The notes under the pieces: generated by a model | What the model was told of the DNA's origin: nothing | Databases searched by the model: none | The model's input: the letters and a program-made list of their open reading frames with translations, nothing else | Position numbers and translations under genes: made by a program | In this document: in pieces, positions 244 to 45,933 of the stretch | How positions within the stretch are numbered: the first letter of the stretch is position 1 | Layout: each line of letters begins with the position of its first letter | IMG/VR virus record: IMGVR_UViG_3300018004_000004 | Location: 1-64,000 of that record | Strand: one strand, 5' to 3' | DNA: 64,000 bases

Positions 244-681
244 ATGGCATCGAAGATCGTTAGGCAGGTGGTGCTGCAGTGTATCGACCCGGCGGCCCAC
301 CATAATAAGTACTACGAGATCACAATCCGTCAGGCAGACAGTACCAAGGACAGTCATCGTGTTGACTGTCGCTGGGGCCGGATTGAACACTTCAAAGACG
401 GCAACCCACAGCAGCAGTGGAAGCTTCAAGGAGCCGACTATGATGAAGCAAATGCAGAGCTTGGACGTATCATGTTCTCCAAGCTTAAGAAAGGCTACAA
501 GGTCTTCAAGGACACAGCCAGTGGCCACCAAGCGATTGAGTATCCTGCAAAGGATAAAGTTAAGAAGGGCCCAGTGGCCTTCGAGACTGAGACGAAGTCT
601 TTTGAACGTACTGAGCATGTCGAGATCGCCATCAACTGGTGGAATAATCTTGGCGAAGCGATAGAGGATCGTGCAATATGA
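244..681 (+). CDS. WGR-domain protein; ends in C-terminal tag IEDRAI
   Basis: HNKYYEI...VDCRWGRI...KLKKGY matches WGR domain signature; GAGAGGA SD upstream. Confidence 0.8.
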   Translation: MASKIVRQVVLQCIDPAAHHNKYYEITIRQADSTKDSHRVDCRWGRIEHFKDGNPQQQWKLQGADYDEANAELGRIMFSKLKKGYKVFKDTASGHQAIEYPAKDKVKKGPVAFETETKSFERTEHVEIAINWWNNLGEAIEDRAI

Positions 682-871
682 GATGGAAGCTACCCGAACC
701 TCGGTATGAACCGCCTCATGCAGCTGAGAGACAAAGGGAAGTCTTTGTTTTGCTTCCGCATATAGCTACAGACAGGTATATTTATTGGATGGAGCGGCTC
801 TTGGTTAAAGAAGTGTACAGCCGACCCTTCCATGAGTGGTGTGCTACCGAGTACAGGTCATTGAGGTCCAA

Positions 872-1615
872 ATGAGGATACTAATCATAGAGTGTGGGTC
901 TAGCTTGCTCCCCCTGGCTCTTACGACTGAGGCAGCAAAGCTCTACCCGAAGCCAGAGATTGATACCTTGACGTTGAATCTGAAGTACGTCAAGTTTCCT
1001 GAGCTCAAGCTGGTTTTGAATCAGCAGGCTCCTGATGTGATCATTCTGAATCCGCCGGCCGAGCCAGCAAATGAAGCTGTCTTCGGCCAGCTGATCAAAG
1101 AACTTACTCGCTATAGTTCTATCATGAGCGCCAAGATCATGTTGATGTCTTCAGTGGAGGTATTAGGTGATACGACGCCGCGTTCCGAGGTGGCTATCCC
1201 CTTACCGAACAGCGAGATGGGTACGTTTCTCCGCATGGCAGAGACACGTCTGGAAACTGAAACATCACGCTATTATATATTTAGACTACCTTATACCTTG
1301 GAAAGCCCTCGCGTCAAGGAATGGTTATCCTGGACCGAACCAGCAGAAGATCCTGCCTGGCCTCCGAGACCCGATACTGTAGTAACGTTTGCCAGTATCC
1401 CTGAGGTAGCGCCAATCGTATTGGAGCGCATCCAGTCTGGTTGGTATGGTAAGTATCATGTTACGCCTAATGATTCAGTGTCTATTAGATACTTGATCTC
1501 AGGTGTGACCTTCAGTACGATCGGCAAAGTGACCGACAACTCTCTGGCGAGCAAGTATACCTGGGCGTTGAGCCCGACGCCGTACACTTGGTTCAAGTGG
1601 ACAAAGAAGCCATGA
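872..1615 (+). CDS. Degenerate RmlD/extended-SDR (dTDP-4-dehydrorhamnose reductase-like) protein
   Basis: MRILII start, PDVIILN, KIMLMSSVEVLG, P-x-P-x-S, YYIFRL, GKYHV follow RmlD order, but GxxGxxG and YxxxK are missing; start set at ATG 872. Confidence 0.55.
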   Translation: MRILIIECGSSLLPLALTTEAAKLYPKPEIDTLTLNLKYVKFPELKLVLNQQAPDVIILNPPAEPANEAVFGQLIKELTRYSSIMSAKIMLMSSVEVLGDTTPRSEVAIPLPNSEMGTFLRMAETRLETETSRYYIFRLPYTLESPRVKEWLSWTEPAEDPAWPPRPDTVVTFASIPEVAPIVLERIQSGWYGKYHVTPNDSVSIRYLISGVTFSTIGKVTDNSLASKYTWALSPTPYTWFKWTKKP

Positions 1616-1872
1616 GAACTGTTGTCTCTAACTTTGCGACTGGCACCCAGAAGTTCACCTCTGGAAGAGGAGATGCTTCCTTCATGATTACACACGGCGT
1701 TATCGTTTACACCGTGGATATCTATGGGAATGTTCTCTCTCCTGTTGGGGCTACATTGGATTACGATCACTCGGATACAATGCAAGGCCTTCAGAGTGGA
1801 GTCATTGGAAGAGTAAAGGACTTCTTGACCGTCGATCCTTCAATGGATTCGCCGGCCTCGAAGTTGTGGTGA
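1612..1872 (+). CDS. Hypothetical protein
   Basis: ATGA-coupled ORF. Confidence 0.6.
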   Translation: MRTVVSNFATGTQKFTSGRGDASFMITHGVIVYTVDIYGNVLSPVGATLDYDHSDTMQGLQSGVIGRVKDFLTVDPSMDSPASKLW

Positions 1873-1875
1873 TCT

Positions 1876-2178: not shown

Positions 2179-2361
2179 CCTTTCGTCCGCCTGCTCCTGA
2201 GCCCGGCGCTGAGTGGAAAGGAATAGCAGAGAAGTGTTATGCTTGCAAGGGCCCTAACGGGGTCTACGCTAAGCATGTAGACGGTAAATGGAGACCCTAC
2301 TGTTGGACGTGCATCAAGCCGCCCCTCACCGAGGTTGAAATCAGAGTAGTCAAGAGGAAAG

Positions 2362-2838: not shown

Positions 2839-2986
2839 TGAATCCAGACGGCTGTAGGATAATCAACCTCAGAAGAGTTCTTAGCAGTGTCTGGGTCTTC
2901 TGTTGGGTACGTGCTGTTCCTGAACAATACTTGAGTCGTATGGTTAATCGGCGCCACTTTTGGTATAGCCGTAATGGGAGGGACTA

Positions 2987-13626: not shown

Positions 13627-13902
13627 ATGTTTCTGAATGAGGTGAAGTTTGGAGCCGTTGTTCGCTATAATACCGGCTACTATAGAGTCACAGGACTTCG
13701 TGAAGTGAACGGCGAGATTCGTGTCGAGCTGGCACTGCCAGCAGGCACGGAGCTGTACGTTGTCTCTCCGAAAGAGCTGTTCCATCTGACACCTATTGAG
13801 AGAGAAGAAGGACCTGAAATCAGGAACATATTTGAAGTGGAGATCGCAGAGACAGTAGCTAGACAACTAGCTAGTAGTGGTCATCTAGATCGGGAGGTCT
13901 GA
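13627..13902 (+). CDS. Small beta-rich hypothetical protein; ends in tag HLDREV
   Basis: GGAGG SD; C-terminal motif. Confidence 0.7.
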   Translation: MFLNEVKFGAVVRYNTGYYRVTGLREVNGEIRVELALPAGTELYVVSPKELFHLTPIEREEGPEIRNIFEVEIAETVARQLASSGHLDREV

Positions 13903-15375: not shown

Positions 15376-15978
15376 ATGCAAAAGCAGTATGACTTTACTA
15401 TTCCCATGGTTGAGGAACGAGATGGGAATCGCATCAAGGTATACGATATCTTCTCGTTGCTGAACAAGGAAAGGATCGTCATGATTGGTACTCCGATCAT
15501 GGACTACACCGCGGCGATCGTGGTGGCACAGCTCCTGTTCCTCGAGAAGGAAGACAAGACCAAGCCGATCATGCTCTACATCAATAGCCCAGGTGGAGAC
15601 ATCACTGCTGGGCTGGCGATTAGAGATACGATGCGGTTGATTCGGCCGTCTGTTCATACCATTGGGTTTGGACAGTGTGCCTCTATGGCGGCTACCTTGC
15701 TGACTGCCGGCGAGAAGGGACACCGTTATGTTCTGCCTAGCACGCGCGTCCTGATCCACCAACCGTGGTCTGGTGGCGGTGGCGGACAGCAAAGCGACGT
15801 GGAACTCCAAGCCAAGGAGCTCCGCCGCATGAGAGACCAGATCGAGAAGTATCTGTCACAGGATACCGGCCAGACCCTAGAGAAGATCCACGCCGACTGC
15901 GATCGTGACTACATTATGGAGGCCGAAGAGGCAGTGGCTTATGGCATCGCCGACAAAGTCCTCACAAAGCGTACATAA
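15376..15978 (+). CDS. clpP: ATP-dependent Clp protease proteolytic subunit
   Basis: DIFSLLNKERIV, YINSPGG, CASMA (catalytic Ser), LIHQP (His), DRD. Confidence 0.96.
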   Translation: MQKQYDFTIPMVEERDGNRIKVYDIFSLLNKERIVMIGTPIMDYTAAIVVAQLLFLEKEDKTKPIMLYINSPGGDITAGLAIRDTMRLIRPSVHTIGFGQCASMAATLLTAGEKGHRYVLPSTRVLIHQPWSGGGGGQQSDVELQAKELRRMRDQIEKYLSQDTGQTLEKIHADCDRDYIMEAEEAVAYGIADKVLTKRT

Positions 15979-27200: not shown

Positions 27201-27408
27201 CACTTTTTATGCTAAAGTGGCGGCTGCTGAACAAGCACTTGATCGTAAGGTCATTAACCGTCGCGCTCACCAGATCGATTTGCGTTGGTTCGTTGACCGG
27301 GTGCTTAGCGATCGCGAAGGGCTACTCTCTTACCTTAAGGAAGAAGGAGAGAAAGGCATCTTCGTAACTGAGAAGACCTTCCAGATGATCGAGGATCGAG
27401 ATGTCTAA
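24295..27408 (+). CDS. SNF2-like SF2 helicase/translocase with Cys-rich insert; ends in tag IEDRDV
   Basis: MRMGKT, IIDEIH, LTGTLMPN, EKVVVLT, EGTNLSAANTVI, WEPG..QQAWSR. Confidence 0.85.
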   Translation: MKKIEYVNALDFDLDEVEVEQNDQQSSPVQPYVPPAPVVKKAKVHKAVVPLGVSDHPSVTLHKGGGKIVITPNDVHAAVALIEIRERIAQLANPVLTATREKLEIQLLPDVQPMDFARATRAWSLVNVKLDEHPMVRLLARYHLDVTISPSLGNWVKKEEKRLAKELTPFLLPDFKDERSLFEKVEAGMVLECTKNFDFDNQRIFTKGQRYQVVDTARGGQGGGNAEDAKEHQDGMVKISKVAIAPGCKIIMADDTVFPWTVFNGDLENNFHYEEKVIYEPSKCVPAKYPGLLAMYQKRLDAMGLELYDHVKVDAVQEALKRGTLNGKLMRMGKTSESIVCAMFWGSKRVAIVAPRNARLFTVKEFERLGLKNYVIVDSMEDLKKPGTFYLLTYSWMKKTFDPHRVFRRKGQSYLHRTYTENKKEIIVEHKCPFCKRSLERLEIKKNKTEGGFLVEKTVGWTKERGYICRNQLCDCKAKFASRTGAPINGAAWGYTIDSTTRKIKRAKPIKLGGKTVNITSFTGAKVDQIVQKKGKVKNDEGKMVDGLIEETITFQDNYVGWIDWGLKFHKDCKDKNTKGRYCHECHQADAVWIPAPYKQRITTDRGKKVHLKDYFTGAIIDEIHTIKSLDSDTGKAIRSIRAKRRMGLTGTLMPNTPADAFWPLHWVFKGGSAAFPYHQKDGATEFYDRFCEYINIKRGHGLKDSRKMLPYLKNPVAFWELMSSKMVRRNYEDELVKASLAKANRYYPNVEFHRVESVMDPKQAQLMVAAINHFESNFNQYSAQVQQAGHLLNQAMVVSQMVYLRIGATCPEYFNVKLKKVGKAAVYDGPLGGGKMADIQNICATKVAANEKVVVLTDFVEMRKSLAKMLSEHNPIVFDGTWDDDERNENFEAFLEDPTRKIFIAGTRQIREGTNLSAANTVICCDLLWEPGLQQQAWSRAFTPTSENRTCNVYVLMAKNSIDEHVYNTFYAKVAAAEQALDRKVINRRAHQIDLRWFVDRVLSDREGLLSYLKEEGEKGIFVTEKTFQMIEDRDV

Positions 27409-30311: not shown

Positions 30312-30647
30312 ATGCCCAACCAAGAAGTTAGTGTCGTCGTTCGCGATGACGGGACTGTGGTCTGCTTGGATCACCCTGAATGCAAATGCTTTAGGGAGAT
30401 GGGATCTGTAAAGACTCGGAGAGCCAGCCATGTGGAACCGTATACGAGAGGCTATCGTATGAGCTTCCACCTACTGAGATGGATTTTCGGGGATCAAGGG
30501 CGAGTATCAGACTGGACCAGGAGTTGGGACGTACTATGGAGAGTGAATCTTACTCCTGTAGGTGGTCCTATTCTGCCTGGCGCCACGATCCTAAGGGAGG
30601 CAGCCCTCAGACGAGAAGTCGAGTGGCTGAATAAGAACCTAACATGA
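30312..30647 (+). CDS. Conserved hypothetical protein of the type often found beside DUF1257/AAA modules
   Basis: VVRDDGTV, RRASHVEP, W.V.L.PVGGPIL, REAAL..EVEWL. Confidence 0.65.
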   Translation: MPNQEVSVVVRDDGTVVCLDHPECKCFREMGSVKTRRASHVEPYTRGYRMSFHLLRWIFGDQGRVSDWTRSWDVLWRVNLTPVGGPILPGATILREAALRREVEWLNKNLT

Positions 30648-30931
30648 ACGTTCCAATCGTAGATGTTTCATTTACGATCGTCGGCCGTGTCAAGTTGGAC
30701 ACTGACCGCGCAATGGAAGATCCCTGGTGGGACCAGTCCGTAAAGGGCTTGAACTTGGATGATAAGATCCAGTTCCAACAGGCGATCTCTAACTACATTT
30801 CGGCCTACTTACGACATGAGAATCTCCTGAGTGAGGTTCCTTGGTCTTGTGGGCCCGCTGATGTATACTCAGTCACAGTTGAGGTGAATAATGGCGGAAG
30901 CAACAACGCAGCCGACGAACGGAGCGTCTGA
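30644..30931 (+). CDS. Hypothetical protein; ends in tag-like ADERSV
   Basis: ATGA-coupled ORF. Confidence 0.65.
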   Translation: MNVPIVDVSFTIVGRVKLDTDRAMEDPWWDQSVKGLNLDDKIQFQQAISNYISAYLRHENLLSEVPWSCGPADVYSVTVEVNNGGSNNAADERSV

Positions 30932-32870
30932 ACATCCTGCATTCATTCAGACTTTCTTCGATAGCTACCGGGCTAAGGAAGCTCACGTCTTCATTTTCCA
31001 TGGAAACGTGAACGACTTCCCGAATAACTCCGGCCGGCGCGGTGATCTGCGCAGGGCTCTCGCTCTATCTTGCGATACTCCAACGATGATGCTGGAGTGC
31101 AAGGACGACGAGCAGAAGAAAGAAGTGAACAAGGTGGCTCGTATTCTGGCGTATTATACGATGTCCAATGGCCTTGAGTTCGCTAGCCCGGAGAGCAACA
31201 ATCTCTGGCGCCAAGTCATGAAGCAGTACATCAAGGACATGATGCCCGCTACGAGCGACACAGCCCTCGATGATCAGATCAAGGATCTGGAAAAGCCGTC
31301 GAACTTTGACATGGCTTTGAACACCTTGAACATCTGGTTCACTGCCTCCAAGAGATTGCATCAACACAATCAGAAGGTTGATGCCTCCAAGAAGGGGAGT
31401 AAGCTCCCTGATCCTCTGTTTACGATCGTGTTCTTCGATGGCGATGCTATCTTCCCGGCCGGCCAGATGTCTCAGCTGGCTAGCGATCGCGCGTCCATTG
31501 TGAACATTCGAAGCTGGGCCCGTGATGAAGCGCTTGGTAACAAGAACCGTGTCATCATAGTGACCCGACATATCTCTGATATCCATGAGTCTATTCGCGG
31601 TGGCGAGTCTGGTGTCAGGGCCATCCTGATTCCCAAGCCCACCTTGAAAGACCGTGAAGAGTGGTTGACCAACTTTGACGCCAGCTTGAAAGAGCGCGCC
31701 CAGAAGGGCTCTCCTCAGAAGCTGGGAGGCAAGGAAGTGACCTGTATTGAATACGCGCCTGGGTTTGATGCCCATACGTTTAGCATTCAAGCGGCAGGGC
31801 TTTCGCGCAAGCAGATGGAAAACATCTTCATGCGTGCCCAGTTGGATCATGAACCCATTGACTTCCCATTGGTCAGAGCTTTGAAGACCAAGGCACTGGA
31901 GGAAGAGTATGGTGGTCTCGTGGATTTCCGCGAACCCGAACACGGGTTTGATAAAGTTGGGGGGCACGAACACCTCAAGCGCTACTTTCAGCGGAAGATT
32001 ATTGCTCCGCTCAAGAAGGGTGACAAGAGGACTTGTTCCCGTGGGGTACTTCTCACTGGACCTCCGGGCACTGGAAAGACGGCCATCACTCTGGCTATGG
32101 CGAAGGAAGCTGGTGTAAACTTCATGATCGCGCACCTCGCGCGATTGTTCGGAGGTCTCGTTGGAGAGACAGAAAGTAACACTCAGAAGTTTATCGAGGC
32201 TGCTGACTCCGCGGCTCCCGTTATCGTATTTATTGATGAACTTGAGTCGGTGCTTTCGGCTGGCCGCACATCTGTCGGTGACTCGGGGACATCGTCTCGT
32301 GTATTCAACTCGATCATGACATGGTTGTCCGATGAATCCCGTTCGGGTCGTATCGTCGTTGTTGGCGCCACGAACCGTCCGGACCTATTGGACTCCGCCT
32401 TGATTCGTTCTGGTCGTTTCGATGCCATTCTGCCCGCGCTGCCACCCGCAGCTGGCGATGCCAAAGGGCGGTTGGAGATCTTAAAGGCCCTGACGAAGAA
32501 ACAAGGATTCAAGTTTGCTCCTGAGCTCTCCAAGACTTTGGAGTCTCATGAGGAAGGTATTGGAAAGATGCTGCATGATCAACGGATATGGACTGGAGCT
32601 GAGATGGAGGTGGTCCTGAAAGAGGCCATCGACAACGCATGCTTCGACAATCGTGGGGCCGTCGGCCTCGCCGATTGGAATCAGGCCTTCCATGACGTGC
32701 TGCCATCTACACGTGAAGTGGAAAAGATGATCGACCTGTCGCTTCTGTTCGTGAACCATCTGGGCTACTGTCCAGAAGATTGGCGTGAACGCGCGCAGAA
32801 GAAGGGTGAGATCATGAGCTCGATCAAATCGGGCTACGAAGACGGGACGATCTCGGACAGAGACGTCTAA
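30891..32870 (+). CDS. AAA+ ATPase (classical clade, Ycf46-like layout: degenerate N-terminal module plus active C-terminal module); ends in tag ISDRDV
   Basis: GPPGTGKT, pore loop GLVGETE, FIDELE, ATNRPDLLDSALIRSGRFD. Confidence 0.92.
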   Translation: MAEATTQPTNGASEHPAFIQTFFDSYRAKEAHVFIFHGNVNDFPNNSGRRGDLRRALALSCDTPTMMLECKDDEQKKEVNKVARILAYYTMSNGLEFASPESNNLWRQVMKQYIKDMMPATSDTALDDQIKDLEKPSNFDMALNTLNIWFTASKRLHQHNQKVDASKKGSKLPDPLFTIVFFDGDAIFPAGQMSQLASDRASIVNIRSWARDEALGNKNRVIIVTRHISDIHESIRGGESGVRAILIPKPTLKDREEWLTNFDASLKERAQKGSPQKLGGKEVTCIEYAPGFDAHTFSIQAAGLSRKQMENIFMRAQLDHEPIDFPLVRALKTKALEEEYGGLVDFREPEHGFDKVGGHEHLKRYFQRKIIAPLKKGDKRTCSRGVLLTGPPGTGKTAITLAMAKEAGVNFMIAHLARLFGGLVGETESNTQKFIEAADSAAPVIVFIDELESVLSAGRTSVGDSGTSSRVFNSIMTWLSDESRSGRIVVVGATNRPDLLDSALIRSGRFDAILPALPPAAGDAKGRLEILKALTKKQGFKFAPELSKTLESHEEGIGKMLHDQRIWTGAEMEVVLKEAIDNACFDNRGAVGLADWNQAFHDVLPSTREVEKMIDLSLLFVNHLGYCPEDWRERAQKKGEIMSSIKSGYEDGTISDRDV

Positions 32871-32915: not shown

Positions 32916-33224
32916 ATGTTCCTCATACACGGCGGTTGTAGTAGCAAAGAGAGCTTCGAGAGATATAAAAAGTGGATAGCTGATGCTTGTCCCAAGGATT
33001 ATAAGTTCCATGAGACTTCTCATCCTGAAGATCCCACGTTTCCTTGTTTGGCTATCACTTTAGTGGATAACATTAACTTTCATCTGACATGGGATGTGAA
33101 GCACACAGTCGTGTCTAAGGATGCTTTGCTTACAGCCTTGGGTCTAAGTACTCAAGAGCTAGAGGTAAAGCTCGGAATGGTTTCAGATCCCGCACTGGAT
33201 GTAGTAGAATCGAGAGAGGTTTAA
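32916..33224 (+). CDS. Hypothetical protein; ends in tag VESREV
   Basis: ORF with C-terminal motif. Confidence 0.7.
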   Translation: MFLIHGGCSSKESFERYKKWIADACPKDYKFHETSHPEDPTFPCLAITLVDNINFHLTWDVKHTVVSKDALLTALGLSTQELEVKLGMVSDPALDVVESREV

Positions 33225-33875
33225 ATGGTATTGCTCATTTCCAACATAGCAAACTGGAATGCTGCATGCAAGAAGTATAAGATCGTTACCTCAGTGCCTG
33301 GGCAGTTCCCGGTAATGATCAGCTTCACCAAGCCTGGCAGTGATACAGATGATATAGATTACGAGCCGAATGCGACTAACATCTGTATTATGTATCCTGT
33401 CCATGCATGCAAGCTCCTGGCCGCCTGCTCCCAACAGCACTTGGGCGCCGCGGTAGATGGTATTACCCTGGTGAAAGCTGCTGCCTCTCTTAAGCCCTGG
33501 CATCAAGGCCTGGGTGGTATAGGCATGCAGAACGTTCAGAAGGCTCCGGCTGGTATCTCTGGTAAGCCGGCGTATGTGCTTGAGAACGAAGAGGATGGCA
33601 CTAAGTCGACGATCACATCCGACAAAGAATACATGGTCGGTGATGTGGTTCTGGTTGACGGAGTCGAGTATACAGTCACGGAAATAACGAAGGTCTTGTC
33701 TGATGGTGTGACGCAAGTCAAAGAAGACAGTGACCTGGACATCATGCCAGAGAAGCCTGGCATGCCCGGCATGGAAGAAATGCCGATCGATCCTACTCTG
33801 TTGGACCAAGCCTCTACGAAGATCGCCGAGGTCGGAGATCAGGGACACGTACTCGACGTCGAGAGAGACGTCTAA
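33225..33875 (+). CDS. Hypothetical protein with acidic C-terminal region; ends in tag DVERDV
   Basis: ORF with C-terminal motif. Confidence 0.75.
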   Translation: MVLLISNIANWNAACKKYKIVTSVPGQFPVMISFTKPGSDTDDIDYEPNATNICIMYPVHACKLLAACSQQHLGAAVDGITLVKAAASLKPWHQGLGGIGMQNVQKAPAGISGKPAYVLENEEDGTKSTITSDKEYMVGDVVLVDGVEYTVTEITKVLSDGVTQVKEDSDLDIMPEKPGMPGMEEMPIDPTLLDQASTKIAEVGDQGHVLDVERDV

Positions 33876-34087
33876 TGTATCCGCCTCTTGGGCCACCTAT
33901 TCCAATGCCTGGTAATCCAAAGATGGGAGTGTTATATCAACACCCCACCGATGGGGAAATAGGTTATTACGGAGAGTTAGGGAGATGGATCCCCTTGAAT
34001 AAAGTAACTACTCCTATTCCCATGGATGCGTTGAGAGTTGAGGAAGTATTGCTCGACAGAGAACTCATTGAAGAGAGAGATGTCTAA
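33875..34087 (+). CDS. Small protein with tail-fibre-like PxxPxxGxLY...W motif; ends in tag IEERDV
   Basis: PGNPKMGVLYQHPTDGEIGYYGELGRWIPL. Confidence 0.7.
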   Translation: MYPPLGPPIPMPGNPKMGVLYQHPTDGEIGYYGELGRWIPLNKVTTPIPMDALRVEEVLLDRELIEERDV

Positions 34088-34416
34088 TGACAGACTGGCA
34101 ACATTATGAGGGGAAGACCTGGAACCAGAAGTATTGGGAGACGTATGATGATGTGCCTTTTGGTCCGCCTCCCAAGCCTAAGCCTCCAGGCGTTCCTAAG
34201 TTTCCACCTCCTCAGAAACCGGATCCAGATCTCGTAGAGAAGTACAAGAAGTATCTCGATGAGCTGGAGAAGAATACGGAGAAGTTTGTACCGTGGGTGC
34301 CGTCAAAGCCCAAGCCGAAACCGAAGCCTAAGCCTAAGAAGAAGCGGAAGCCAAAGGCAGAGAAAGTAGCGCCTCCTCCGCCTCATGATGATACAATAGA
34401 AGAGAGGCAAATATGA
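34087..34416 (+). CDS. Pro/Lys-rich low-complexity protein; ends in tag IEERQI
   Basis: KPKPKPKPKP tract; C-terminal motif. Confidence 0.7.
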   Translation: MTDWQHYEGKTWNQKYWETYDDVPFGPPPKPKPPGVPKFPPPQKPDPDLVEKYKKYLDELEKNTEKFVPWVPSKPKPKPKPKPKKKRKPKAEKVAPPPPHDDTIEERQI

Positions 34417-34576
34417 GTCACTTCCCACACATATGCCACTATTGCCATAGGATTATCTGGCCGTGGCAGGCTATTACCTGGAATCCTCTGTGGAACATCT
34501 GGAACGTCTATGATTACTTCCACCGGCCGACGTGCTGGGAGAAGTGGTTGGACCAGCACGGAACCAAGGGGTCAGA

Positions 34577-35683
34577 ATGATCCGTCTTTGCATGATGGTT
34601 AAGAACGAGTCCGAGAGGATTCGCCCGGCTTTGCAATCCGCCAAGCCTTTTATAGGGCGCTGGTTGATCATCGACACCGGGTCCACGGATGACACCAAGA
34701 ACATTATCCTGGATGAGATGCATGGAATCCCGGGTAATCTTGTTGACCGGCCGTGGGTCGGTTGGACACACAATCGCAATGAGCTCATTGAGATTGCCAA
34801 GGAACCCAGTCCGGCGGACTTCCTAATGCTGCTGGATGGCGATCAAGTAATCGTTCCGCAGACTACCGGCGAGTTGAAGTTGGATCCTGACGTAGCCTAT
34901 TGGGCTATTCATCGCCAGGGAACCACAGAGTTCAAGAAGCCATTCATTATACCGGCCAAGTACAACTGGCATCATGTTGGTGCCACACATGAGTACTTGA
35001 CGTGTGAACCGGATAAACCTAAGGTAGAGTTACTACCTATCGTTATCCAGGAGTCCGGCCGGCCAAAGACGACGGAGTATTTCCTGAACGACGCCAAGAT
35101 CCTCGAGGCGGAGCTGGAGAAGGATCCGAACAACTCTCGGAATGTATTCTACCTGGCTCAGAGCTATCGGGATGCCGGGTCCTACAGCAAAGCCATAGAG
35201 CTCTATCTGAAGAGGGCTACTATGGGTGGCTGGTACGAAGAAGTATGGTATTCTTTGTATCAGGTCGCGGTCCTTGAGATGAAGAGAGGGGACACCTGGA
35301 ACATAGTCATTGCAGATTTCCTGCATGCTTATGACTTCAATCCAAATAGGTCCGAGTCCTTGGGTGCCCTCGCGCGGTATTGCCGGGAGAAGAAGATGTA
35401 CAACCTGGCATACATATTCGCCGAGAAGGCTTGTCAGATTCCCCTCGCAGATGATAAGCTCTTCATGGATAAGAGCTTCTGTGAGTGGCGGAATCGAGAT
35501 GAATATGCCTTGGCTGCTTTCTTCACCGGCCGATTTCATGAGGCAGCCAACACGTGGGCATCTTTGTTAATGGGAGTGAAGGAAGGTCAACATCTTCCTG
35601 ACTCTGAAAAGGAACGTGTTCAAAAGAACTATGAGTTCGCGCGCGAGAAAGTGTTCGCGAGCCCAAGCGTGGAGAAAGCATGA
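34577..35683 (+). CDS. GT2-family glycosyltransferase with C-terminal TPR repeats
   Basis: LCMMVKNE, IDTGSTDDT, RNE, LLDGD, RNVFYLAQSYRD and following TPR helices; start at ATGA 34577. Confidence 0.88.
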   Translation: MIRLCMMVKNESERIRPALQSAKPFIGRWLIIDTGSTDDTKNIILDEMHGIPGNLVDRPWVGWTHNRNELIEIAKEPSPADFLMLLDGDQVIVPQTTGELKLDPDVAYWAIHRQGTTEFKKPFIIPAKYNWHHVGATHEYLTCEPDKPKVELLPIVIQESGRPKTTEYFLNDAKILEAELEKDPNNSRNVFYLAQSYRDAGSYSKAIELYLKRATMGGWYEEVWYSLYQVAVLEMKRGDTWNIVIADFLHAYDFNPNRSESLGALARYCREKKMYNLAYIFAEKACQIPLADDKLFMDKSFCEWRNRDEYALAAFFTGRFHEAANTWASLLMGVKEGQHLPDSEKERVQKNYEFAREKVFASPSVEKA

Positions 35684-35863
35684 CGGATATGGAAGACAAG
35701 AAGAAAGCGAAGAAGAAGAAGTTCAACATCGCCGGCAGTTCGAAGAGCCCTGGCAAGCAACTGATTCAAGCGAAGCAGATTACTACCAGTAAGGCCTCTC
35801 GTGGATTTAGCACGAAGAAGCCCGTGAAGACTCACTCTAGTTATCCTCTATAAGGAGAGAATC

Positions 35864-36343
35864 ATGGAACTGTATGTCAAGAAACTACAGGAGCATGCGA
35901 AGCTGCCCCAGAGAGCGCATCCTGGGGATCTCGGGTTTGATCTTTTCGCCCTCGAGACGGTGGCTGTACAGCCCGGTCAAACTGTTGCGGTCAAGACAGG
36001 CATTGCTTGCGAGTTTCCGGAGGGCTGGGGCGGAATCATTAAAGCTCGTAGCTCACAAGGGAAGGCTGGCATCGATGTCTTCGGAGGCGTGGTTGACAGT
36101 GGTTACAGGGGTGAAATCACTGTCCTGTTGTACAACTCGAACGCGCCGATAGAGTTCCGCGGTTCAGGAGGTCCACTTGGACCCAACGATTTCTATCAAT
36201 ATGACCCAACGGTCATTTACAACCATGGAGACAAGGTTGCTCAACTGGTATTGGTTCCGGTGTTTCCCGGCACTATTCAGGAAGCTACCACTCTGGGTGA
36301 GAGTTCTCGGGGTACACAAGGCTTTGGCTCGACAGGGCGGTAA
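35864..36343 (+). CDS. dut: Trimeric dUTPase
   Basis: GFDL, ARSS, GVVDSGYRGEI, AQLV, RGTQGFGSTG. Confidence 0.95.
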   Translation: MELYVKKLQEHAKLPQRAHPGDLGFDLFALETVAVQPGQTVAVKTGIACEFPEGWGGIIKARSSQGKAGIDVFGGVVDSGYRGEITVLLYNSNAPIEFRGSGGPLGPNDFYQYDPTVIYNHGDKVAQLVLVPVFPGTIQEATTLGESSRGTQGFGSTGR

Positions 36344-36382
36344 GGGTAAACTGGTTTACATACAGCGGATCAGGAGAACGGA

Positions 36383-37099
36383 ATGAAAGGTCGATTGATT
36401 ACGTTCGAAGGTGTTGACGGTACAGGCAAGACCACTCAAATGGAGATGCTTGGCGCCCGGATGAGGGAGGAAGGCTATGGAGTCGTCGTTACTAAGGAGC
36501 CTGGCAGCCCGGTGGATCCTACCGACCTGGGTAGTGCGATACGCCAGGTTCTGTTCCACACGGTTACGACTCACAACATGGCTCGGGGAGTGGCTGATTG
36601 CCTATTCCTCGCCGATCACATTCAGCATGTGGCAAAGGTGGTTGAGCCGGCCCTTGAAAAGGGTTTAGTGGTCCTGTCCGATCGCTATGCGGATTCTGAA
36701 TGGGCTTACTCGACTGTGAAGAACACGCCAGGTGCTATCCTGGATGCCTTCCAGGCGTTCTTTGGCCCTATTCCGGACATCACTGTGCTCTTCGTAGCAT
36801 CAGATGTGGATGCTTTCCTCGAGCGCGCGCGAGCACGCAGAGGGGACAACAACAAGCAAGCTGGCAAGAAGTGGAATGACACGCAAGACCAGCTGCGCAT
36901 CCAACAGGAGTATCTGAATAGACTCGTAGGTCAGGATCGCACGATCGTGATCACCGTCTATCCGGACCAGACTCCTGGACAAGTATTCGAGATGGTCTGG
37001 GAAGCTATACAAGACCGTCTGCAGAAACCTGTGGAGTATATTGAAGGCGAGCAATCTCACGTTGTTGCTGTGAGCGACGCCGTTCCACAGGTCGACTGA
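36383..37099 (+). CDS. tmk: Thymidylate kinase
   Basis: ITFEGVDGTGKTTQ, TKEPG, LFLAD, VLSDRYADS. Confidence 0.93.
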   Translation: MKGRLITFEGVDGTGKTTQMEMLGARMREEGYGVVVTKEPGSPVDPTDLGSAIRQVLFHTVTTHNMARGVADCLFLADHIQHVAKVVEPALEKGLVVLSDRYADSEWAYSTVKNTPGAILDAFQAFFGPIPDITVLFVASDVDAFLERARARRGDNNKQAGKKWNDTQDQLRIQQEYLNRLVGQDRTIVITVYPDQTPGQVFEMVWEAIQDRLQKPVEYIEGEQSHVVAVSDAVPQVD

Positions 37100-37248: not shown

Positions 37249-37348
37249 CCCTGAGTGGTGTATTGGTTTTTGGGCAATCATGCAGGCCGTCCATGGAGCA
37301 CGTCGGTCCTGAATACCGAAGGGCAAGGTTCGAATCCTTGCTTGGGGA
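37249..37348 (+). tRNA. Atypical or degenerate tRNA-like cloverleaf with about 30-nt D-loop insertion; anticodon loop CCTGAAT
   Basis: Acceptor CCCTGAG/CTTGGGG, D-stem GTG(T)/(G)CAC, anticodon stem TCGGT/ACCGA, T-arm CAAGG-TTCGAAT-CCTTG; no encoded CCA. Confidence 0.6.
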
Positions 37349-37356
37349 ATATTCTT

Positions 37357-37623
37357 ATGCCATCACTAATAGCAAATCAACACGATTTACCAGGCCCTGA
37401 ACCACAAGACTACACCAAGATGTTCTCCATTCCTTTGGAGGAACGTTGTGATGCCTGTGAAGGCATGGGTTTAGTTAGGTGGCGCCATTCAATGAATGGC
37501 CTTGACTGGATGAAGTGCTGGATCTGTCATGGGTCTGGACGCGCGCCGGCCGAGATGCTGGAAGCAATGGCCAAAGATAGAGCTCACAAGGCCGAGGTTG
37601 GAGAAGATGACAGAGCAGTCTAA
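37357..37623 (+). CDS. DnaJ-type CxxCxGxG zinc-finger protein; ends in tag-like EDDRAV
   Basis: CDACEGMG and CWICHGSG. Confidence 0.65.
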   Translation: MPSLIANQHDLPGPEPQDYTKMFSIPLEERCDACEGMGLVRWRHSMNGLDWMKCWICHGSGRAPAEMLEAMAKDRAHKAEVGEDDRAV

Positions 37624-37896: not shown

Positions 37897-39153
37897 ATGT
37901 TCAAACTGTTTGAGCACCTCGACAAAGCACTTGTAGGTATGGAGAAGCGTGATGACTGGACAAGCAAATCTGCCAGACTCTGGCCTTCGGAAAGTTCGGC
38001 TGTCCTGCTCGAACCCACAGTTGCGGGTTTTGCCGGGGGCTGTGGACGAAAGGTGTATTACAGGCTCACAGGGGAGAAGACTACCAGCCAAATGGACCCT
38101 GTCGGTGCGCGACGGGTTCGTACTGGAAAGGCTGTCGAAGAAGACACTACGCTCCAGGCTATGGAGGCCGGTCTGCACGTTGCCTCTGGGGTCAGACACT
38201 ACGTGCCAAACATTGATCTGGCCTTTGAGCTGGACCTTGTTGTCCTAGATCCACAATCCAGCCAACCGGTGATATGTGAAAACAAATCGATCTACGGCTA
38301 TATGGCCCAGAAGGAAATCATTGGTGGCCCTTATGCGAAGGGCAAACCAAAGCTCGAGCATGTTCTCCAGACACTCATTTATATCAACGAGATACGTTCT
38401 GGTGCCAACCTCAAGCAAATCATTGCAACTGCGCAAGCGGATAAACCAACTAATCCGCGCAACCGAGTCCGGGTCACAGACGTGAACCTGGGGATGATCA
38501 AAGATGATGCGACCGTGTATGGCAAGATCTGCTACGAGACACGAGACACCTGCCTCACTGCGGAGTTCGATATCGAAATCTACGAGGATTATGATGGCCT
38601 CCACTATCCTCAAGTCAACGGCGATGTTTGGCGCATTTTCACGGTGGAGTCGATTTATGAACGCTTCGAACAGATCCAGGGTTACTTTAACCGATCACAG
38701 GCTGAAGCGATCCGGAGGCTCCAGGAGCAAGGGACAATCCGTCCAGCCTCCTTGCCCGCGGAAGCGTCGGAAGAGGCTGTAATCGCCTGGAAAGGCCAGG
38801 AAAAGGCCTTCTGGGAGAGGGTCGGGGAGGAGATGAGACGCCTACCGGTGTCCTACCTACCCCCAGCAGACTACCGCTACCGGTATACGGACATAGCCAT
38901 CGAAAGCTTTGCTGAGAAGGGCTTTATCGGCAAGACCAAGTTCGCCGAATGGAAGTCCTGGAAGAACGGCAAGAGCCGGAAGTGGAAGGAGTCCAAGATC
39001 GGACCTATCATTGGGGACTGGCAGTGTCGGTACTGCCCCTATAAGTTCCCTTGTATTGCTCTGGAGTACCCAGACCTGGCGCCCATGGTCAACGACGTCC
39101 TGGCCGCCCAGGCAGATGAAGAAGAGTCGGAAGACGCAGAGAGGAAAGTCTAA
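37897..39153 (+). CDS. Cas4/RecB-like PD-(D/E)xK exonuclease with probable Fe-S cysteines; ends in tag-like DAERKV
   Basis: GCGRKVYY, ELDLVV, ENKS, QTLIY, CRYCPYKFPC. Confidence 0.75.
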   Translation: MFKLFEHLDKALVGMEKRDDWTSKSARLWPSESSAVLLEPTVAGFAGGCGRKVYYRLTGEKTTSQMDPVGARRVRTGKAVEEDTTLQAMEAGLHVASGVRHYVPNIDLAFELDLVVLDPQSSQPVICENKSIYGYMAQKEIIGGPYAKGKPKLEHVLQTLIYINEIRSGANLKQIIATAQADKPTNPRNRVRVTDVNLGMIKDDATVYGKICYETRDTCLTAEFDIEIYEDYDGLHYPQVNGDVWRIFTVESIYERFEQIQGYFNRSQAEAIRRLQEQGTIRPASLPAEASEEAVIAWKGQEKAFWERVGEEMRRLPVSYLPPADYRYRYTDIAIESFAEKGFIGKTKFAEWKSWKNGKSRKWKESKIGPIIGDWQCRYCPYKFPCIALEYPDLAPMVNDVLAAQADEEESEDAERKV

Positions 39154-43538: not shown

Positions 43539-44603
43539 ATGATGGCTAAGAAAGAAGAGCAAGTGGACTTGAACGAGGAGTTGGAGACGGAGCTCGCACA
43601 GTACAACTTCGGCGATATGTTGGAACTCGCCGAGAACATTACAGACATGTCAGTCGAGTGTACTCCGACGGGATTTCCGCAGCTGGATAAGATCCTACAT
43701 GCATCCCTCAACGGACTTCCACATGGACGTGACATCGAGATATTTTCTAAGGAACCTGAAGTAGGCAAGACATCTCTTGGCCTTCAGATTCTCCAGCATT
43801 GGCAGAGCATGGGTAAGAGAACACTCATCATTGACGTTGAACGGACAATCACAATCGAGTTTCTCGCGCAACTGGGGATCGTTACGACGCCGGGCAACCC
43901 GGGAGTTATTCCAGTTCGTGTTTCCCGACCGCCTGATGCGTTTACTGCAGAGCAAGTCCTGGATCTGGTACGCGACGCCTCAAAAGTGTTCGACCTCGTT
44001 GTGGTGGACTCTATAGCCGCAATGGATATCAAGGCCAACCTTGAGAAGGACACTGATGAGAGTGCCAAGATTGGAGCTGTAGCCCTATTGATGTCCAACT
44101 TCCTGCGCAAGAACGTTGCCAAGCGCGCTACTGTCATCTGGATCAACCAGACCCGACAAGTAGTGGGTGGCTACAATCCCACAGGACAGATTCGATATCA
44201 GACTATGGGTGGCCGAGCGCTGCCTTTCTTCGGTACTATCCGGTTGGATATCTCGATCATCGAGAAGCTGAAGAAGGAAGAGGATGGAGAAGAGACTGTC
44301 TACGCGTTGAAGACTAAGGTCTACACCACGAAGAACAAAGTCTCTCCACCGTACAAGCAGGCAATCCTGACTTACGTCCTGGGTGAAGGATTCTCAGTCC
44401 ACTATGATTACTTCGAGCTGGGTTTGAAGCTGGGAGTAATCATCAAGAAGGGTGGCTGGTATCAGTTTGGCGACGCCAAGATACAAGGCGACCTGAACTT
44501 CTATAAAGCCATGAAGAAGAACGAAGAGCTCTTCAACGGAATCAAGAAAGCTATTGGTGAGGAGCTGGCCAGTCATGGCGCAGCCGCAATCACTGAAGGA
44601 TAA
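43539..44603 (+). CDS. recA: RecA-like recombinase
   Basis: PTGF..LD, GLPHGRDIEIF, GKTS, VVVDSIAA, IWINQTR, GGRALPFF, KNKVSPPYK, IIKKGGWY. Confidence 0.93.
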   Translation: MMAKKEEQVDLNEELETELAQYNFGDMLELAENITDMSVECTPTGFPQLDKILHASLNGLPHGRDIEIFSKEPEVGKTSLGLQILQHWQSMGKRTLIIDVERTITIEFLAQLGIVTTPGNPGVIPVRVSRPPDAFTAEQVLDLVRDASKVFDLVVVDSIAAMDIKANLEKDTDESAKIGAVALLMSNFLRKNVAKRATVIWINQTRQVVGGYNPTGQIRYQTMGGRALPFFGTIRLDISIIEKLKKEEDGEETVYALKTKVYTTKNKVSPPYKQAILTYVLGEGFSVHYDYFELGLKLGVIIKKGGWYQFGDAKIQGDLNFYKAMKKNEELFNGIKKAIGEELASHGAAAITEG

Positions 44604-45198
44604 TCCACTCTCAGTCTTCGCTATAACAACTGAGCCTGTGGCATGCATCGAGGGGGAGAAGTGTGCAAACTCCCCCTCACATAGTTCCCATCCAGAATGT
44701 AATAACTGCAGGTTTTCGCCTGGGGCGCCGTACTTTATTCGTACGCACCACTGGAAGCCTATGCTGGAGGGTTGGCACCATCGCAAGCTTGAAGAGGAGA
44801 AGCGTCATGCCAAGCGTCAGGCAGCCATTGCTCGTCAAGAGGCCAAAAAGGCGAAAGATCCCACCAAGCAGGCCCGTGTTCGCGCGGCCGCAAGGGCAGA
44901 ACGCAAAACCAATGACCATATCATTAAGTCTACCCGGAACTCAGGGAGGGTAAACCGTGACGGTGATCATCTGTTGTTTGATTCTGTCGTGGTGGATACG
45001 AAACTGCAATCAACGGCCACGGAACCCGTGATTCATCTCAGGGAGTTGGACAAGGTAAGACAAGATGCTAGACGAAATGGCAGGTGTTGCGGGGCTCTTT
45101 GCCTACAAAACAAGACTGGAAGAAGCGTTATTGTGGTTGACGCAGCCGATTTTGCTGCGCTCACCCGCGGCCTCAATCTGGATCAAAAAGGCCTCTGA
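44575..45198 (+). CDS. Zinc-finger plus putative PD-(D/E)xK (Hjc-like) nuclease
   Basis: C..C / C..C N-terminus; NSG..N.DGD....VVVDTK. Confidence 0.5.
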   Translation: MAQPQSLKDNPLSVFAITTEPVACIEGEKCANSPSHSSHPECNNCRFSPGAPYFIRTHHWKPMLEGWHHRKLEEEKRHAKRQAAIARQEAKKAKDPTKQARVRAAARAERKTNDHIIKSTRNSGRVNRDGDHLLFDSVVVDTKLQSTATEPVIHLRELDKVRQDARRNGRCCGALCLQNKTGRSVIVVDAADFAALTRGLNLDQKGL

Positions 45199-45463
45199 CG
45201 ATCCCGATCGCTATTGGGCTCGGCGTATCGGTAGTCAGGATTGGTTTCCAGTGACGGCCGACTGGTTGTACAGTCGTGAGTATGTTTGGTTGTACAGTCG
45301 TGAGTATGTTGAGGTAGATAAACCGTATGCATCTACCTTAGAGTCGGCGCTCAGAGATGATGGAGCCTATACTCTGGCAGGAGAACCTATCAGCATGCCT
45401 GTGAAGGCTAAGGAAGCTACTCCTAAGTACATTCCACCTCTGTTCGAAGAGAGGGAAGTATGA
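45065..45463 (+). CDS. Hypothetical protein (start uncertain); ends in tag FEEREV
   Basis: Contains WLYSREYV x2; C-terminal motif. Confidence 0.65.
   Translation: MLDEMAGVAGLFAYKTRLEEALLWLTQPILLRSPAASIWIKKASDDPDRYWARRIGSQDWFPVTADWLYSREYVWLYSREYVEVDKPYASTLESALRDDGAYTLAGEPISMPVKAKEATPKYIPPLFEEREV
45263..45310. repeat. Perfect 24-bp tandem duplication
   Basis: TGGTTGTACAGTCGTGAGTATGTT x2. Confidence 0.95.
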
Positions 45464-45933
45464 GCAACCCTCACATGGATCCGATTACTGGCGAGTTTTT
45501 AGTGGATGATAAGATCGGCGAGTATCAAGATCACCAGAAGATGAAGACCGAGGCGGATTTCAAATCGTATACAGAGCTGTATAAGAATGTTGAGTCATAC
45601 GGTCTGACAGGTACGATTCCAGTGGGTGGTTTGACTGGGCCGGTGTTCCGGTGGCGCTGGATGCCTCATACTATCTACAAGTTAGGAGAAGTCGTTCTGG
45701 ACTTCTTCAACAGGATGCAATCCTGTAACCAATATGGTGTATCCGGAATGTATGAGCCGATGTGGCACAACAACTACGGCTCTATTACGCATGATGGTGG
45801 TATTAACTGGATAGACTATGGACTTCCAGTCACATTCCAACAGCCGATCATCAATATCCCTCCGAACTTGAGCTTCAAGAAGGAAGAGGAGTCGCAACCT
45901 ATGACAGATTTCATCGAGGAGCGCGAGGTATGA
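45460..45933 (+). CDS. Protein with CBM5/12-like (W.P.T.Y..G..V...C...G.SG..EP.W) module; ends in tag IEEREV
   Basis: WMPHTIYKLGEVV...CNQYGVSGMYEPMW...THDGGINW. Confidence 0.65.
   Translation: MSNPHMDPITGEFLVDDKIGEYQDHQKMKTEADFKSYTELYKNVESYGLTGTIPVGGLTGPVFRWRWMPHTIYKLGEVVLDFFNRMQSCNQYGVSGMYEPMWHNNYGSITHDGGINWIDYGLPVTFQQPIINIPPNLSFKKEEESQPMTDFIEEREV

Follow-up and report, generated by a model that had tools for sequence, protein, structure and literature searches.

A short C-terminal peptide ending in acidic-Arg-x-Val/Ile shared by about one in twenty proteins of an uncultured jumbo phage

Why should proteins of a phage that have little else in common end in the same few residues? The preliminary description of the first 64 kb of virus record IMGVR_UViG_3300018004_000004 (64,000 nucleotides, referred to as the window) listed at least 10 unrelated proteins with near-identical C-termini. 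It proposed that selection acts on the peptide rather than on the DNA, and that the peptide is an address label analogous in logic to ssrA degrons, HbYX tails, EEVD-TPR ligands or PDZ ligands. To determine whether the observation holds, we extended the analysis to the complete single-contig record (215,395 bp), belonging to an uncultured phage and designated G000, and to five related genomes (G001 to G005) and additional relatives (designated L).

The observation was confirmed and proved stronger than first described. All 13 listed C-termini were found at the stated stop coordinates, and five additional tagged genes were detected outside the span first examined. One ends at position 64586 (FERVV), and four are located on the minus strand, at 157734-158375 (EEREI), 159737-160054 (DDRQV), 160422-160781 (EERKI), and 160781-161407 (EEREI). 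Depending on the analysis, 17 to 18 of about 340 called genes end in [D/E]-R-x-[V/I]-stop against 0.2 to 0.5 expected (P of about 1e-20 to 1e-26). The pattern [DE]R.[VI] at the stop was present in 17 of 342 called genes, against 0.23 expected from its internal frequency (P = 2e-26), and an unbiased scan of all 2- to 3-position patterns in the last five residues ranked acidic-R-x-aliphatic first (17 versus 0.5 expected, P = 9e-21). In comparison, 147 unrelated viral loci comprising 2,464 genes contained 5 such tails (0.2%). The pair [DE]R with Arg exactly three residues from the end (position -3) occurred 18 times, against about 1.6 at every other offset. Arg was present exactly at this position in 18 genes of G000 and 17 genes of G001, against about 1.7 at other offsets. 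Internal occurrences were at the chance level (43 observed, about 40 expected). These results indicate that the register of the motif is fixed relative to the free end of the protein.

Some entries of the original list required correction. The tagged proteins are not all unrelated, since the products of 159737-160054 and 160422-160781 are weak paralogues, as is one pair in G001, leaving at least 13 independent families in G000. Three proteins listed as weaker variants may be chance or recent occurrences, since their tails are not conserved in orthologues about 50 to 70% identical. The first, a 95-aa protein (30644..30931, plus strand; ADERSV at 30911-30928), has a tail that is kept in relatives 97% identical and lost in orthologues 57% and 49% identical. 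The second, a 122-aa zinc-ribbon-like protein with a weak DnaJ_CXXCXGXG match (37255..37623, plus strand; EDDRAV at 37603-37620), has a tail that is absent in orthologues 62% identical. The third, a 418-aa PD-(D/E)XK/Cas4-like exonuclease according to its feature annotation and structure neighbours (37897..39153, plus strand; DAERKV at 39133-39150), has a tail that is kept at 96% identity but not in orthologues about 60 to 70% identical in L005 and L006 or in G001 to G005. Finally, the ADREV sequence of the HAD protein is internal and was not counted.

The largest tagged protein of the window is an SNF2-family helicase of 1037 aa (24295..27408, plus strand; IEDRDV at 27388-27405) containing Helicase_C and SNF2 domains (phrog_62). 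Among its 52 closest homologues, 34 end in [DE]R followed by one or two residues, in contrast to 1 of 92 more distant SNF2 proteins. The motif is thus the ancestral tail of the SNF2 helicase of this phage family, present well beyond this genome, which had not been anticipated. The second large carrier is a p97/Cdc48-like tandem AAA ATPase of 659 aa (30891..32870, plus strand; ISDRDV at 32850-32867) predicted to combine a degenerate D1 and an active D2 (PF00004, E = 8e-33). PDB hits were VAT/p97 D2 (E = 2.5e-62), and a Foldseek search aligned 620 to 700 columns to p97, Cdc48, and Rix7. In the tree of the AAA proteins, the ER-type tail is confined to one clade. In AlphaFold models, the tails of both proteins are placed on flexible extensions, as residues 1020-1037 of the helicase, following the last helix, and residues 650-659 of the ATPase had pLDDT values below 50.

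The AAA gene is followed by a run of four tagged genes on the plus strand. The first encodes a 102-aa protein (32916..33224; VESREV at 33204-33221), whose orthologue, 34% identical, ends in LEQREI. The second encodes a 216-aa acidic protein (33225..33875; DVERDV at 33855-33872), whose orthologues, only 28 to 31% identical, keep HVLD[DT]ER[DA][VI] with an Arg codon varying among AGA, CGC, CGA, CGG, and AGG. The third encodes a 70-aa protein (33875..34087; IEERDV at 34067-34084), a position occupied in relatives by other small genes with the same tail. The fourth encodes a 109-aa protein (34087..34416; IEERQI at 34396-34413). Small genes at this position in L005 and L007 end in IEEREV and IEERQV, respectively, whereas the N-terminally homologous gene of L003 is longer and untagged. 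In the G000 clade, the AAA gene is followed by 3 to 6 tagged small genes, nearly all consecutive, whose content differs between relatives while the tail stays. In the window, the run is directly followed by an untagged gene (34592..35683, plus strand) encoding a GT2 glycosyltransferase plus TPR protein (Pfam Glycos_transf_2 and TPR_17).

The remaining tagged genes of the window, on the plus strand, encode a 145-aa WGR-domain protein (244..681; Pfam WGR, E = 2.7e-9; IEDRAI at 661-678), a 91-aa protein (13627..13902; HLDREV at 13882-13899), a 132-aa protein (45065..45463; FEEREV at 45443-45460), and a 157-aa protein (45460..45933; IEEREV at 45913-45930). The orthologue of the WGR protein in G001 is 34% identical and ends in YADRVV. 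The 91-aa protein had no Pfam or PHROG match, and the only relatives covering it are identical. The 132-aa protein had no Pfam match. Homologues of the 157-aa protein that are 73% and 50% identical end in IEEREV and IEEREI, respectively.

We next assessed whether selection acts on the peptide or on the underlying DNA. As originally claimed, all six Arg codons are used. In 17 orthologue comparisons, Arg was invariant although its codon switched among CGA, AGA, AGG, CGC, and CGG. Eleven of the 18 tagged genes are translationally coupled to the next gene, compared to 65 of 324 untagged genes (P = 3e-4), and several tails contain GAGG or GGAG. However, seven tagged genes have no coupled downstream gene, including the AAA gene, as had been proposed (gap of 45 nucleotides), and the 65 coupled genes without the tag have diverse tails. 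Together, these results indicate that selection acts on the peptide. The proposed interpretation was therefore supported in part: the motif is selected as a peptide and behaves as a C-terminal address label, but the analogies that had been named do not fit by sequence, since HbYX tails require a penultimate Tyr, EEVD tails end in Asp, and the common classes of PDZ ligands do not have Arg at position -2 (the last residue being 0).

Comparison of the six genomes showed that the motif has spread over many proteins only in two related lineages, G000 and G001 (19 and 14 acidic-R tails by a looser pattern), which are also the only two that encode ClpP. This restricted spread had not been anticipated either. 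The canonical ClpP subunit of G000 (15376..15978, plus strand; PF00574, E = 4.6e-71) is untagged. Its best PDB ClpP hit scored E = 3.9e-58 over nearly the full length, with the Ser, His, and Asp motif segments aligned. A divergent ClpP-like gene is likewise restricted to these two genomes. The four relatives lacking ClpP have 0 to 3 acidic-R tails each, and the AAA ATPase carries the tail only in the clade that holds the two ClpP-encoding genomes. The sister lineages G002 and G004 instead carry the ssrA-like (ssrA/ClpX-type) Ala-Ala ending on 38 of 303 and 29 of 228 proteins, respectively (12 to 13%; about 3 expected), including the AAA orthologue in G002. G000 also encodes a tmRNA with a tag ending in PLAA, peptide deformylase, and PTH2.

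Based on these observations, we propose that the tails are a genetically encoded C-terminal short linear motif, with the consensus hydrophobic-[D/E]-[D/E]-R-x-[V/I/L]-COOH, which is read from the free carboxyl end and would dock many unrelated non-structural proteins to one common partner. In agreement with the latter restriction, none of the 63 genes of the structural block is tagged, in contrast to 17 of 239 genes elsewhere (P = 0.03). In this view, the motif began on the SNF2 helicase and was copied, in two related lineages, onto the AAA ATPase, a WGR protein, and a changing set of small proteins including the run located after the AAA gene. The most likely partner would be AAA+ unfoldase/protease machinery, which could be the phage ClpP working with a host Clp unfoldase, the phage p97-like AAA ATPase, or both, and the tag would act as a degradation or tethering signal controlling the lifetime or delivery of early and middle proteins. 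The existence of the motif, its selection as a peptide, its fixed register, its flexibility, and its distribution across relatives are established by the analysis, whereas binding to a single partner, the proteolytic nature of this partner, and the fate of tagged proteins are inferred. We found no description of this motif.

This reading remains tentative, with a confidence of about 0.4. G000 and G001 are closer to each other than to the other genomes, so that the association with ClpP represents at most one or two evolutionary events, and sixteen other gene families share the same presence pattern. GC content also tracks the split (50% against 41% or 57-59%), so that a host-specific factor fits equally well. 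The SNF2 tail is conserved in relatives without ClpP. The motif is charged and unlike known Clp degrons, and short C-terminal tags that work as autonomous degrons in E. coli are almost all ssrA-like (PMC10862746). The Ala-Ala-tagged set of G002 and G004 (PolA, RecA, clamp-loader-like, and others) overlaps the acidic-R set only at the AAA ATPase, so the two tags need not be equivalent. A self-tagged unfoldase is also awkward if that same unfoldase is the reader.

Among known systems, the ssrA tag and natural C-terminal ClpX degrons (LAA-COOH) are likewise short peptides read together with the free carboxylate and found on many unrelated proteins. The present motif co-occurs with ClpP and a tmRNA, but it is charged rather than non-polar, is encoded in the genes rather than added by tmRNA, and has a role in degradation by inference only. 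The SspB XB tail (LRVVK-COOH) and the UmuD motif (LREI) tether adaptors and substrates to the N-domain of the ClpX AAA+ unfoldase through a C-terminal peptide containing R-x-[V/I] on a flexible tail. This would fit a run of small, variable, adaptor-like proteins next to an AAA gene. However, the residue preceding Arg is Leu instead of acidic and the spacing to the end differs, and this similarity is a lead only. HbYX tails are C-terminal tripeptides shared by unrelated 20S-binding proteins, including AAA unfoldases such as proteasomal ATPases, and their carboxylate docks into a protease ring. The p97-like AAA protein carries the tail only in the clade containing the two ClpP-encoding genomes, but ClpP is known to be docked through IGF-type loops rather than tails, and the SNF2 tail exists without ClpP. 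PDZ-binding motifs (x-[S/T]-x-V-COOH), including those of animal viruses, resemble the logo of the present motif, in which positions 0 and -2 are fixed, -1 is free, and -3 is acidic, as expected for β-strand addition plus carboxylate binding, although no PDZ domain was found in the phage proteins scanned.

The best surviving alternative, although unlikely, is docking of DNA-handling proteins to a replisome or recombination hub, a conserved phage DNA-metabolism protein such as the split family-A polymerase, RecA, the clamp-loader-like protein, DUF1257, or DUF2997, in the manner of the acidic C-terminal tails of T7 gp4 and gp2.5 that bind the polymerase, of the SSB tip (DDDIPF), or of clamp-binding motifs (QL[SD]LF), which recruit unrelated DNA-metabolism proteins to one hub through sequences different from the present one. 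The ancestral carrier is a helicase encoded next to PolA, DUF1257, DUF2997, and the AAA gene in all relatives seen, with a tail kept in lineages without ClpP. Other carriers include the WGR protein and, weakly, the PD-(D/E)XK exonuclease, and tagged genes lie in the replication and nucleotide-metabolism region. However, most carriers are small proteins of unknown function not recognizable as DNA enzymes, one carrier is a p97-like unfoldase, and PolA, RecA, SSB, and primase are untagged in G000. The phage SSB uses the ordinary DEDIPF tip, a separate hub system, and no sliding-clamp domain was found.

Docking to the TPR domain of the GT2-TPR protein, as EEVD tails of Hsp70/Hsp90 bind TPR co-chaperones, possibly followed by glycosylation or assembly of the bound proteins, is less likely. 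The gene abuts the tagged run in the window and in L003, L004, L005, and L007. The tails are acidic, follow a hydrophobic residue (IEEVD compared with IEEREV), and need a free C-terminus, and the gene is present in G000, G001, and G002 without any hit in G003, G004, or G005, of which G003 and G005 are tag-free. Nevertheless, G002 has the gene but only 2 to 3 such tails, the gene of G001 lies far from the AAA gene and the tags, L006 has the run without the gene next to it, the motif ends in Val/Ile/Leu with an invariant Arg at -3, the TPR match is weak (E of about 4e-6), and the glycosyltransferase may act on DNA or sugars.

Hijacking of a host protein specific to the hosts of the two lineages, which would make a set of early phage proteins converge on one host hub through mimicry or evolved binding, is about as doubtful. 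Multi-protein tagging follows GC-defined, and so probably host-defined, lineages, and many carriers are small, fast-evolving early-region genes typical of host take-over functions. However, the SNF2 tail is shared across lineages differing in GC content, and the only hint to the host is that relatives are binned with Acidobacteriaceae MAGs.

Targeting to the virion or to an infection compartment, in the manner of a capsid-targeting, cargo-loading, or import signal, is improbable. Shared C-terminal cargo peptides occur with encapsulins, and four tagged genes sit at the upstream end of the long minus-strand block that holds the structural genes (157.7-161.4 kb), but the structural-block genes are untagged, the carriers include large replication-type enzymes, and no shell or import protein was recognized in about 190 proteins scanned. 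Finally, a nucleic-acid-level signal (a Shine-Dalgarno or translational-coupling constraint, a terminator, or a repeated DNA element that happens to encode the peptide) is already largely refuted by the codon switching, the uncoupled tagged genes, the diverse tails of coupled untagged genes, and the fixed frame and register described above, and the tail DNA is different again in G001.

The complete virus record, designated G000, is a single contig of 215,395 bp with a GC content of 50.7%, of which the window is the first 64 kb. Gene calling with a self-trained codon model gave 342 genes, and almost all genes of the window are on the plus strand. The window holds a replication and nucleotide-metabolism region including genes for UDG, ClpP, an RlaP nucleotidyltransferase, a family-A DNA polymerase split into two genes, an HU-like protein, the SNF2 helicase, DUF1257 at 29024-29446, a nucleoside deoxyribosyltransferase, a p97-like AAA ATPase, a GT2+TPR protein at 34592-35683, dUTPase, thymidylate kinase, a PD-(D/E)XK exonuclease, RecA, primase, RNR, ThyX, and Rad52-like and DprA-like proteins. 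The polymerase is encoded by an exonuclease plus N-terminal part (20091-21476) and a C-terminal part (21928-22914), separated by a gene for a 151-aa protein, and the same split is seen in distant relatives (loci L013 and L015). No cultured phage is close: megablast found no match, and tblastn with the AAA ATPase and SNF2 proteins gave at best 27% and 29% identity, respectively, over partial alignments.

The shared C-terminal motif reported in the preliminary description was confirmed, since every C-terminus that it named was found at the position given. Genome-wide, 17 genes end in [DE]R.[VI], or 18 if Ser is allowed at position -4, against 0.23 expected (P = 2e-26). A pattern scan with no prior ranked 'acidic-R-x-aliphatic' first among all C-terminal patterns (17 versus 0.5 expected, P = 9e-21). 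The dipeptide [DE]R occurs 18 times with Arg exactly at -3 and 0-3 times at each of the other eleven offsets tested (about 1.6 on average), whereas the motif is at chance level inside proteins. It closes 5 proteins among 2,464 genes from 147 unrelated viral loci. Five additional tagged genes lie outside the span initially described, one ending at 64586 and four on the minus strand at 157.7-161.4 kb. These results rule out chance. Common ancestry of the carriers was also rejected because, with tails removed, they share no detectable similarity except for one weak paralogue pair in this genome and one in a relative.

To determine whether selection acts on the peptide or on the DNA, we compared codon usage in the tails. 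All six Arg codons occur. In relatives from IMG/VR whose AAA protein is 84-97% identical, the SNF2 tail remains IEDRDV or LEDRDV while the Arg codon reads CGA, AGA, CGC, or AGG. The 216-aa protein is only 28-31% identical to its orthologues, yet it keeps HVLD[DT]ER[DA][VI]. The Arg residue is unchanged in all 17 comparisons. Homologues of the 157-aa protein at 73% and 50% identity end in IEEREV and IEEREI, respectively. Tagged genes are more often coupled to the next gene (11 of 18), but seven are not coupled, and 65 coupled untagged genes carry ordinary, diverse tails. In G001, a large relative, the DNA encoding the tail is different again. Thus, selection is on the peptide, and a Shine-Dalgarno or coupling artefact was rejected. 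Three weaker variants listed in the preliminary description, ending at 30931, 37623, and 39153, are lost in orthologues about 50-70% identical and are considered doubtful.

The anatomy of the motif was deduced from 31 tails of two genomes. Counting the last residue as -1, this position is V, I, or L, position -2 is free (E, V, D, Q, K, I, or A), position -3 is always R, position -4 is E or D (S in one case), position -5 is mostly E, and positions -6 and -7 are often I, L, or F. AlphaFold2 models of the SNF2 helicase (mean pLDDT of 77) and of the AAA ATPase (mean pLDDT of 84) place the tail after the last confident helix, with pLDDT below 50. The tail is therefore predicted to behave as a flexible extension, and a role as part of the folded domain was rejected for these two proteins. 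The combination of a fixed last residue, a fixed Arg two residues before it, a free residue between them, and a fixed register is what one expects of a peptide bound as an added strand together with its carboxylate, although this remains an inference.

The preliminary description had likened the motif to several C-terminal signals, which we examined in turn. Like ssrA-type ClpX degrons, the motif is located at the extreme C-terminus and, on sequence evidence only, appears to depend on the free end. However, its ending, [DE]-R-x-[VIL], is not the non-polar Ala-Ala or LAA typical of these degrons, and as to ClpXP- or ClpAP-dependent degradation only co-occurrence with ClpP is shown. The HbYX tail requires a penultimate Tyr, which was never observed in the 31 tails. 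In comparison to EEVD-type TPR ligands, which end in Asp and are bound by a TPR carboxylate clamp, the tails are acidic with a hydrophobic residue upstream but end in V, I, or L, and a TPR protein is encoded next to the tagged genes. For PDZ ligands, the last residue (position 0 in PDZ numbering) fits, but the invariant Arg at position -2 of that numbering fits none of the common classes, which have S/T, a hydrophobic residue, or an acidic residue. The consensus also differs from the SSB tip (DDDIPF) and from clamp-binding motifs of the QL[SD]LF type. No PDZ domain, ClpX, ClpS, or sliding clamp was found among about 190 phage proteins scanned with Pfam, a survey that left out the structural block and genes encoding fewer than 75 residues. 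The phage SSB (genome positions 208133-208531; L061:18133-18531) ends in the canonical bacterial tip, TDEDIPF, indicating that the phage probably also uses the ordinary SSB-tip recruitment system, which is a separate hub system.

To trace the origin of the motif, 1.8 billion representative proteins were searched with the SNF2 helicase. Of the 52 closest homologues (about 31-72% identity), 34 end in [DE]R followed by one or two residues: 20 end in V, I, or L, seven end in A, and six are one residue shorter. Only 1 of 92 more distant SNF2 proteins does so. The motif is therefore the old tail of this phage helicase. Five large relatives, G001 to G005, were then compared with G000. G001 (204.6 kb, GC content of 50%, SNF2 46% identical) has 14 tails of the same kind, with a preference for [DE]-R-[V/E]-[L/V/I] (P = 8e-15), including those of its SNF2, AAA, and WGR orthologues. 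G003 and G005 (GC content of 41%) have none, and a search for an alternative shared tail in these two genomes revealed only the generic mild excess of acidic or Lys-rich ends. G002 and G004 (GC content of 57-59%) have 2-3 acidic-R tails each, or 3 and 6 matches to a looser pattern that also allows S or Q before the Arg. On a tree of 105 AAA homologues, the ER-type tail is confined to one clade (97% support), which also contains tails one residue shorter. A multi-protein form of the shorter tail (...DRE) was not seen within 10 kb of the AAA gene in locus L234.

In the G000 clade, the AAA gene is followed by a run of 3-6 small tagged genes, nearly all consecutive, whose membership changes between close relatives while the tail stays (32916-35683 in the window). 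The run ends at the GT2+TPR gene in the window and in four of five relatives (loci L003, L004, L005, and L007). This organization looks like a variable cassette array with a constant C-terminal handle. For most of the tagged small proteins, searches of Pfam and PHROGs gave nothing, and a PDB sequence search gave nothing for the 216-aa protein or for the 418-aa protein. A 235-aa protein of unknown function (genome positions 158392-159099; L011:8392-9099, minus strand) is shared only by G000 and G001. In both genomes its gene sits directly among tagged genes (35424-36083 in G001, next to the tagged genes 36098-36565 and 36565-37095). An atlas search gave only weak and inconsistent leads for this protein.

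The tagged AAA protein is a p97/Cdc48-like type II tandem AAA ATPase of the classical clade with a degenerate first domain and an active D2. PDB sequence searches matched the D2 domain of VAT/p97 (E = 2.5e-62), and Foldseek aligned 620-700 columns to the D1-D2 domains of p97, Cdc48, and Rix7. The N-terminal half has AAA-like neighbours, and no p97 N-domain is present. ClpP occurs only in the two multi-tag genomes. The copy in G000 (15376-15978) is canonical, with a match to PF00574 (E = 4.6e-71) covering profile positions 5-181 of 182 and with the GxASMAA, IHQP, and DRD segments, which contain the Ser, His, and Asp motifs, aligned with solved ClpP structures. The copy in G001 is divergent, with only 27% identity to the first, so the two may have been acquired separately. 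This association represents at most two events, and sixteen other gene families share the same pattern, as do GC content and probably the host. In 15 loci from other ClpP-encoding viral contigs, no tags were found near ClpP.

G002 (L049-L059) and G004 (L063-L071) displayed a different proteome-wide ending. In these genomes, 38 of 303 and 29 of 228 proteins (12-13%) end in Ala-Ala, against about 3 expected (P = 1e-26 and 1e-21, respectively). All four Ala codons and all three stops are used. The ending is kept between orthologues, being present on PolA-exo, RecA, the clamp-loader-like protein, thymidylate kinase, and deformylase in both genomes, and on the AAA ATPase in G002. Unrelated loci show at most a three-fold excess, which comes from one repeated prophage family. 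Ala-Ala-COOH is, from established work on ssrA, the main ClpX determinant. G000 also encodes a tmRNA outside the window (genome positions 73138-73483; L012:9138-9483) with the tag peptide AEFEELPLAA, and G002 and G004 carry permuted tmRNAs whose tags end in YLAAA and GVLAAV.

Together, these results partly support the interpretation proposed in the preliminary description, namely that the peptide is a C-terminal address label. The existence of the motif, its selection as a peptide, its fixed register, and its distribution among relatives are established by the sequences, whereas docking, the identity of the partner, and any effect on degradation or delivery of the tagged proteins are inferred. 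We are confident (probability of about 0.85) that this is a C-terminal short linear motif that docks many non-structural proteins to a common partner. Our preference for AAA+ unfoldase/protease machinery as that partner is more tentative (about 0.4). It is based on the co-distribution with ClpP, the Ala-Ala endings in sister lineages, the tail on the p97-like AAA ATPase, the gene run beside it, and the absence of the tag from the structural block (0 of 63 genes versus 17 of 239 elsewhere). In contrast, the SNF2 tail exists without ClpP, the motif resembles no known Clp degron, short non-ssrA tags are poor autonomous degrons in E. coli (PMC10862746), and the Ala-Ala and acidic-R sets overlap only at the AAA ATPase. 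We cannot exclude the possibility that the partner is instead a replisome hub, the neighbouring TPR domain, or a host hub, or that the tail directs proteins to the virion or to a compartment, the least likely of these alternatives.

A broader hypothesis, which is doubtful but compatible with the evidence, is that this family of roughly 200-kb soil and peat phages uses lineage-specific C-terminal codes written into its genes across the proteome, [D/E]-R-x-[V/I/L] in one clade and Ala-Ala in another. These codes would hand a defined set of non-structural proteins to an unfoldase/protease system that the phage partly brings along (p97-like AAA, ClpP, and tmRNA). This would amount to a virus-encoded programme for protein lifetime or delivery, and the acidic-R motif would be a new class of degron or tether with its own reader.

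Shared C-terminal peptides that send unrelated proteins to one machine are a recurring principle (ssrA, HbYX, EEVD, and the SSB tip), and the logic of a shared C-terminal address is already known. Our literature searches found no case in which a virus writes such a peptide onto 5-13% of its own genes and nothing relevant on this consensus, on phage-encoded ClpP, on the SspB tail sequence, or on DUF1257/DUF2997 in this context. The consensus, its encoding across a viral proteome, and its lineage-specific alternation with Ala-Ala appear to be undescribed. If the reader is a protease or unfoldase, the motif would be a simple, portable degron or tether orthogonal to ssrA and a handle on how large phages time the removal of early proteins. 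If the reader is a replisome or host hub, the tail identifies in one step a whole set of unknown small proteins that act at the same place. In either case, a six-residue peptide gives a direct biochemical way into an uncultured phage family whose tagged proteins mostly have no annotation.

The closest AAA relatives in genome bins are on contigs (L235 and L236) binned with Terracidiphilus and Edaphobacter (Acidobacteriaceae) MAGs from peat and soil, which is only a weak hint at the host group. More distant cellular homologues (about 25% identity) occur in Acidobacteriota, Planctomycetota, and Bacteroidota. In related phages, several AAA and SNF2 homologues (P0169-P0171, P0197, P0208, P0250, and P0256; L234:690-4847) carry inteins or homing endonucleases (Hom_end, LAGLIDADG). 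G000 also encodes a large RNA-repair and anti-damage kit (16156-17229 in the window; genome positions 194049-195332, 200147-200854, 201885-202394, and others) comprising RlaP, two or three RNA ligases, Thg1, PNKP, a cREC_REC domain, NADAR, PTH2, and peptide deformylase. Several of these, namely RlaP, one RNA ligase, and Thg1, are shared only by G000 and G001. Finally, 31 tRNA genes were detected in the genome, about 24 of which form a dense array just past the end of the window (63610-63698 in the window and 64.0-72.5 kb of the genome; L012:10-8486), with one predicted pair overlapping on opposite strands at L012:1486-1574.
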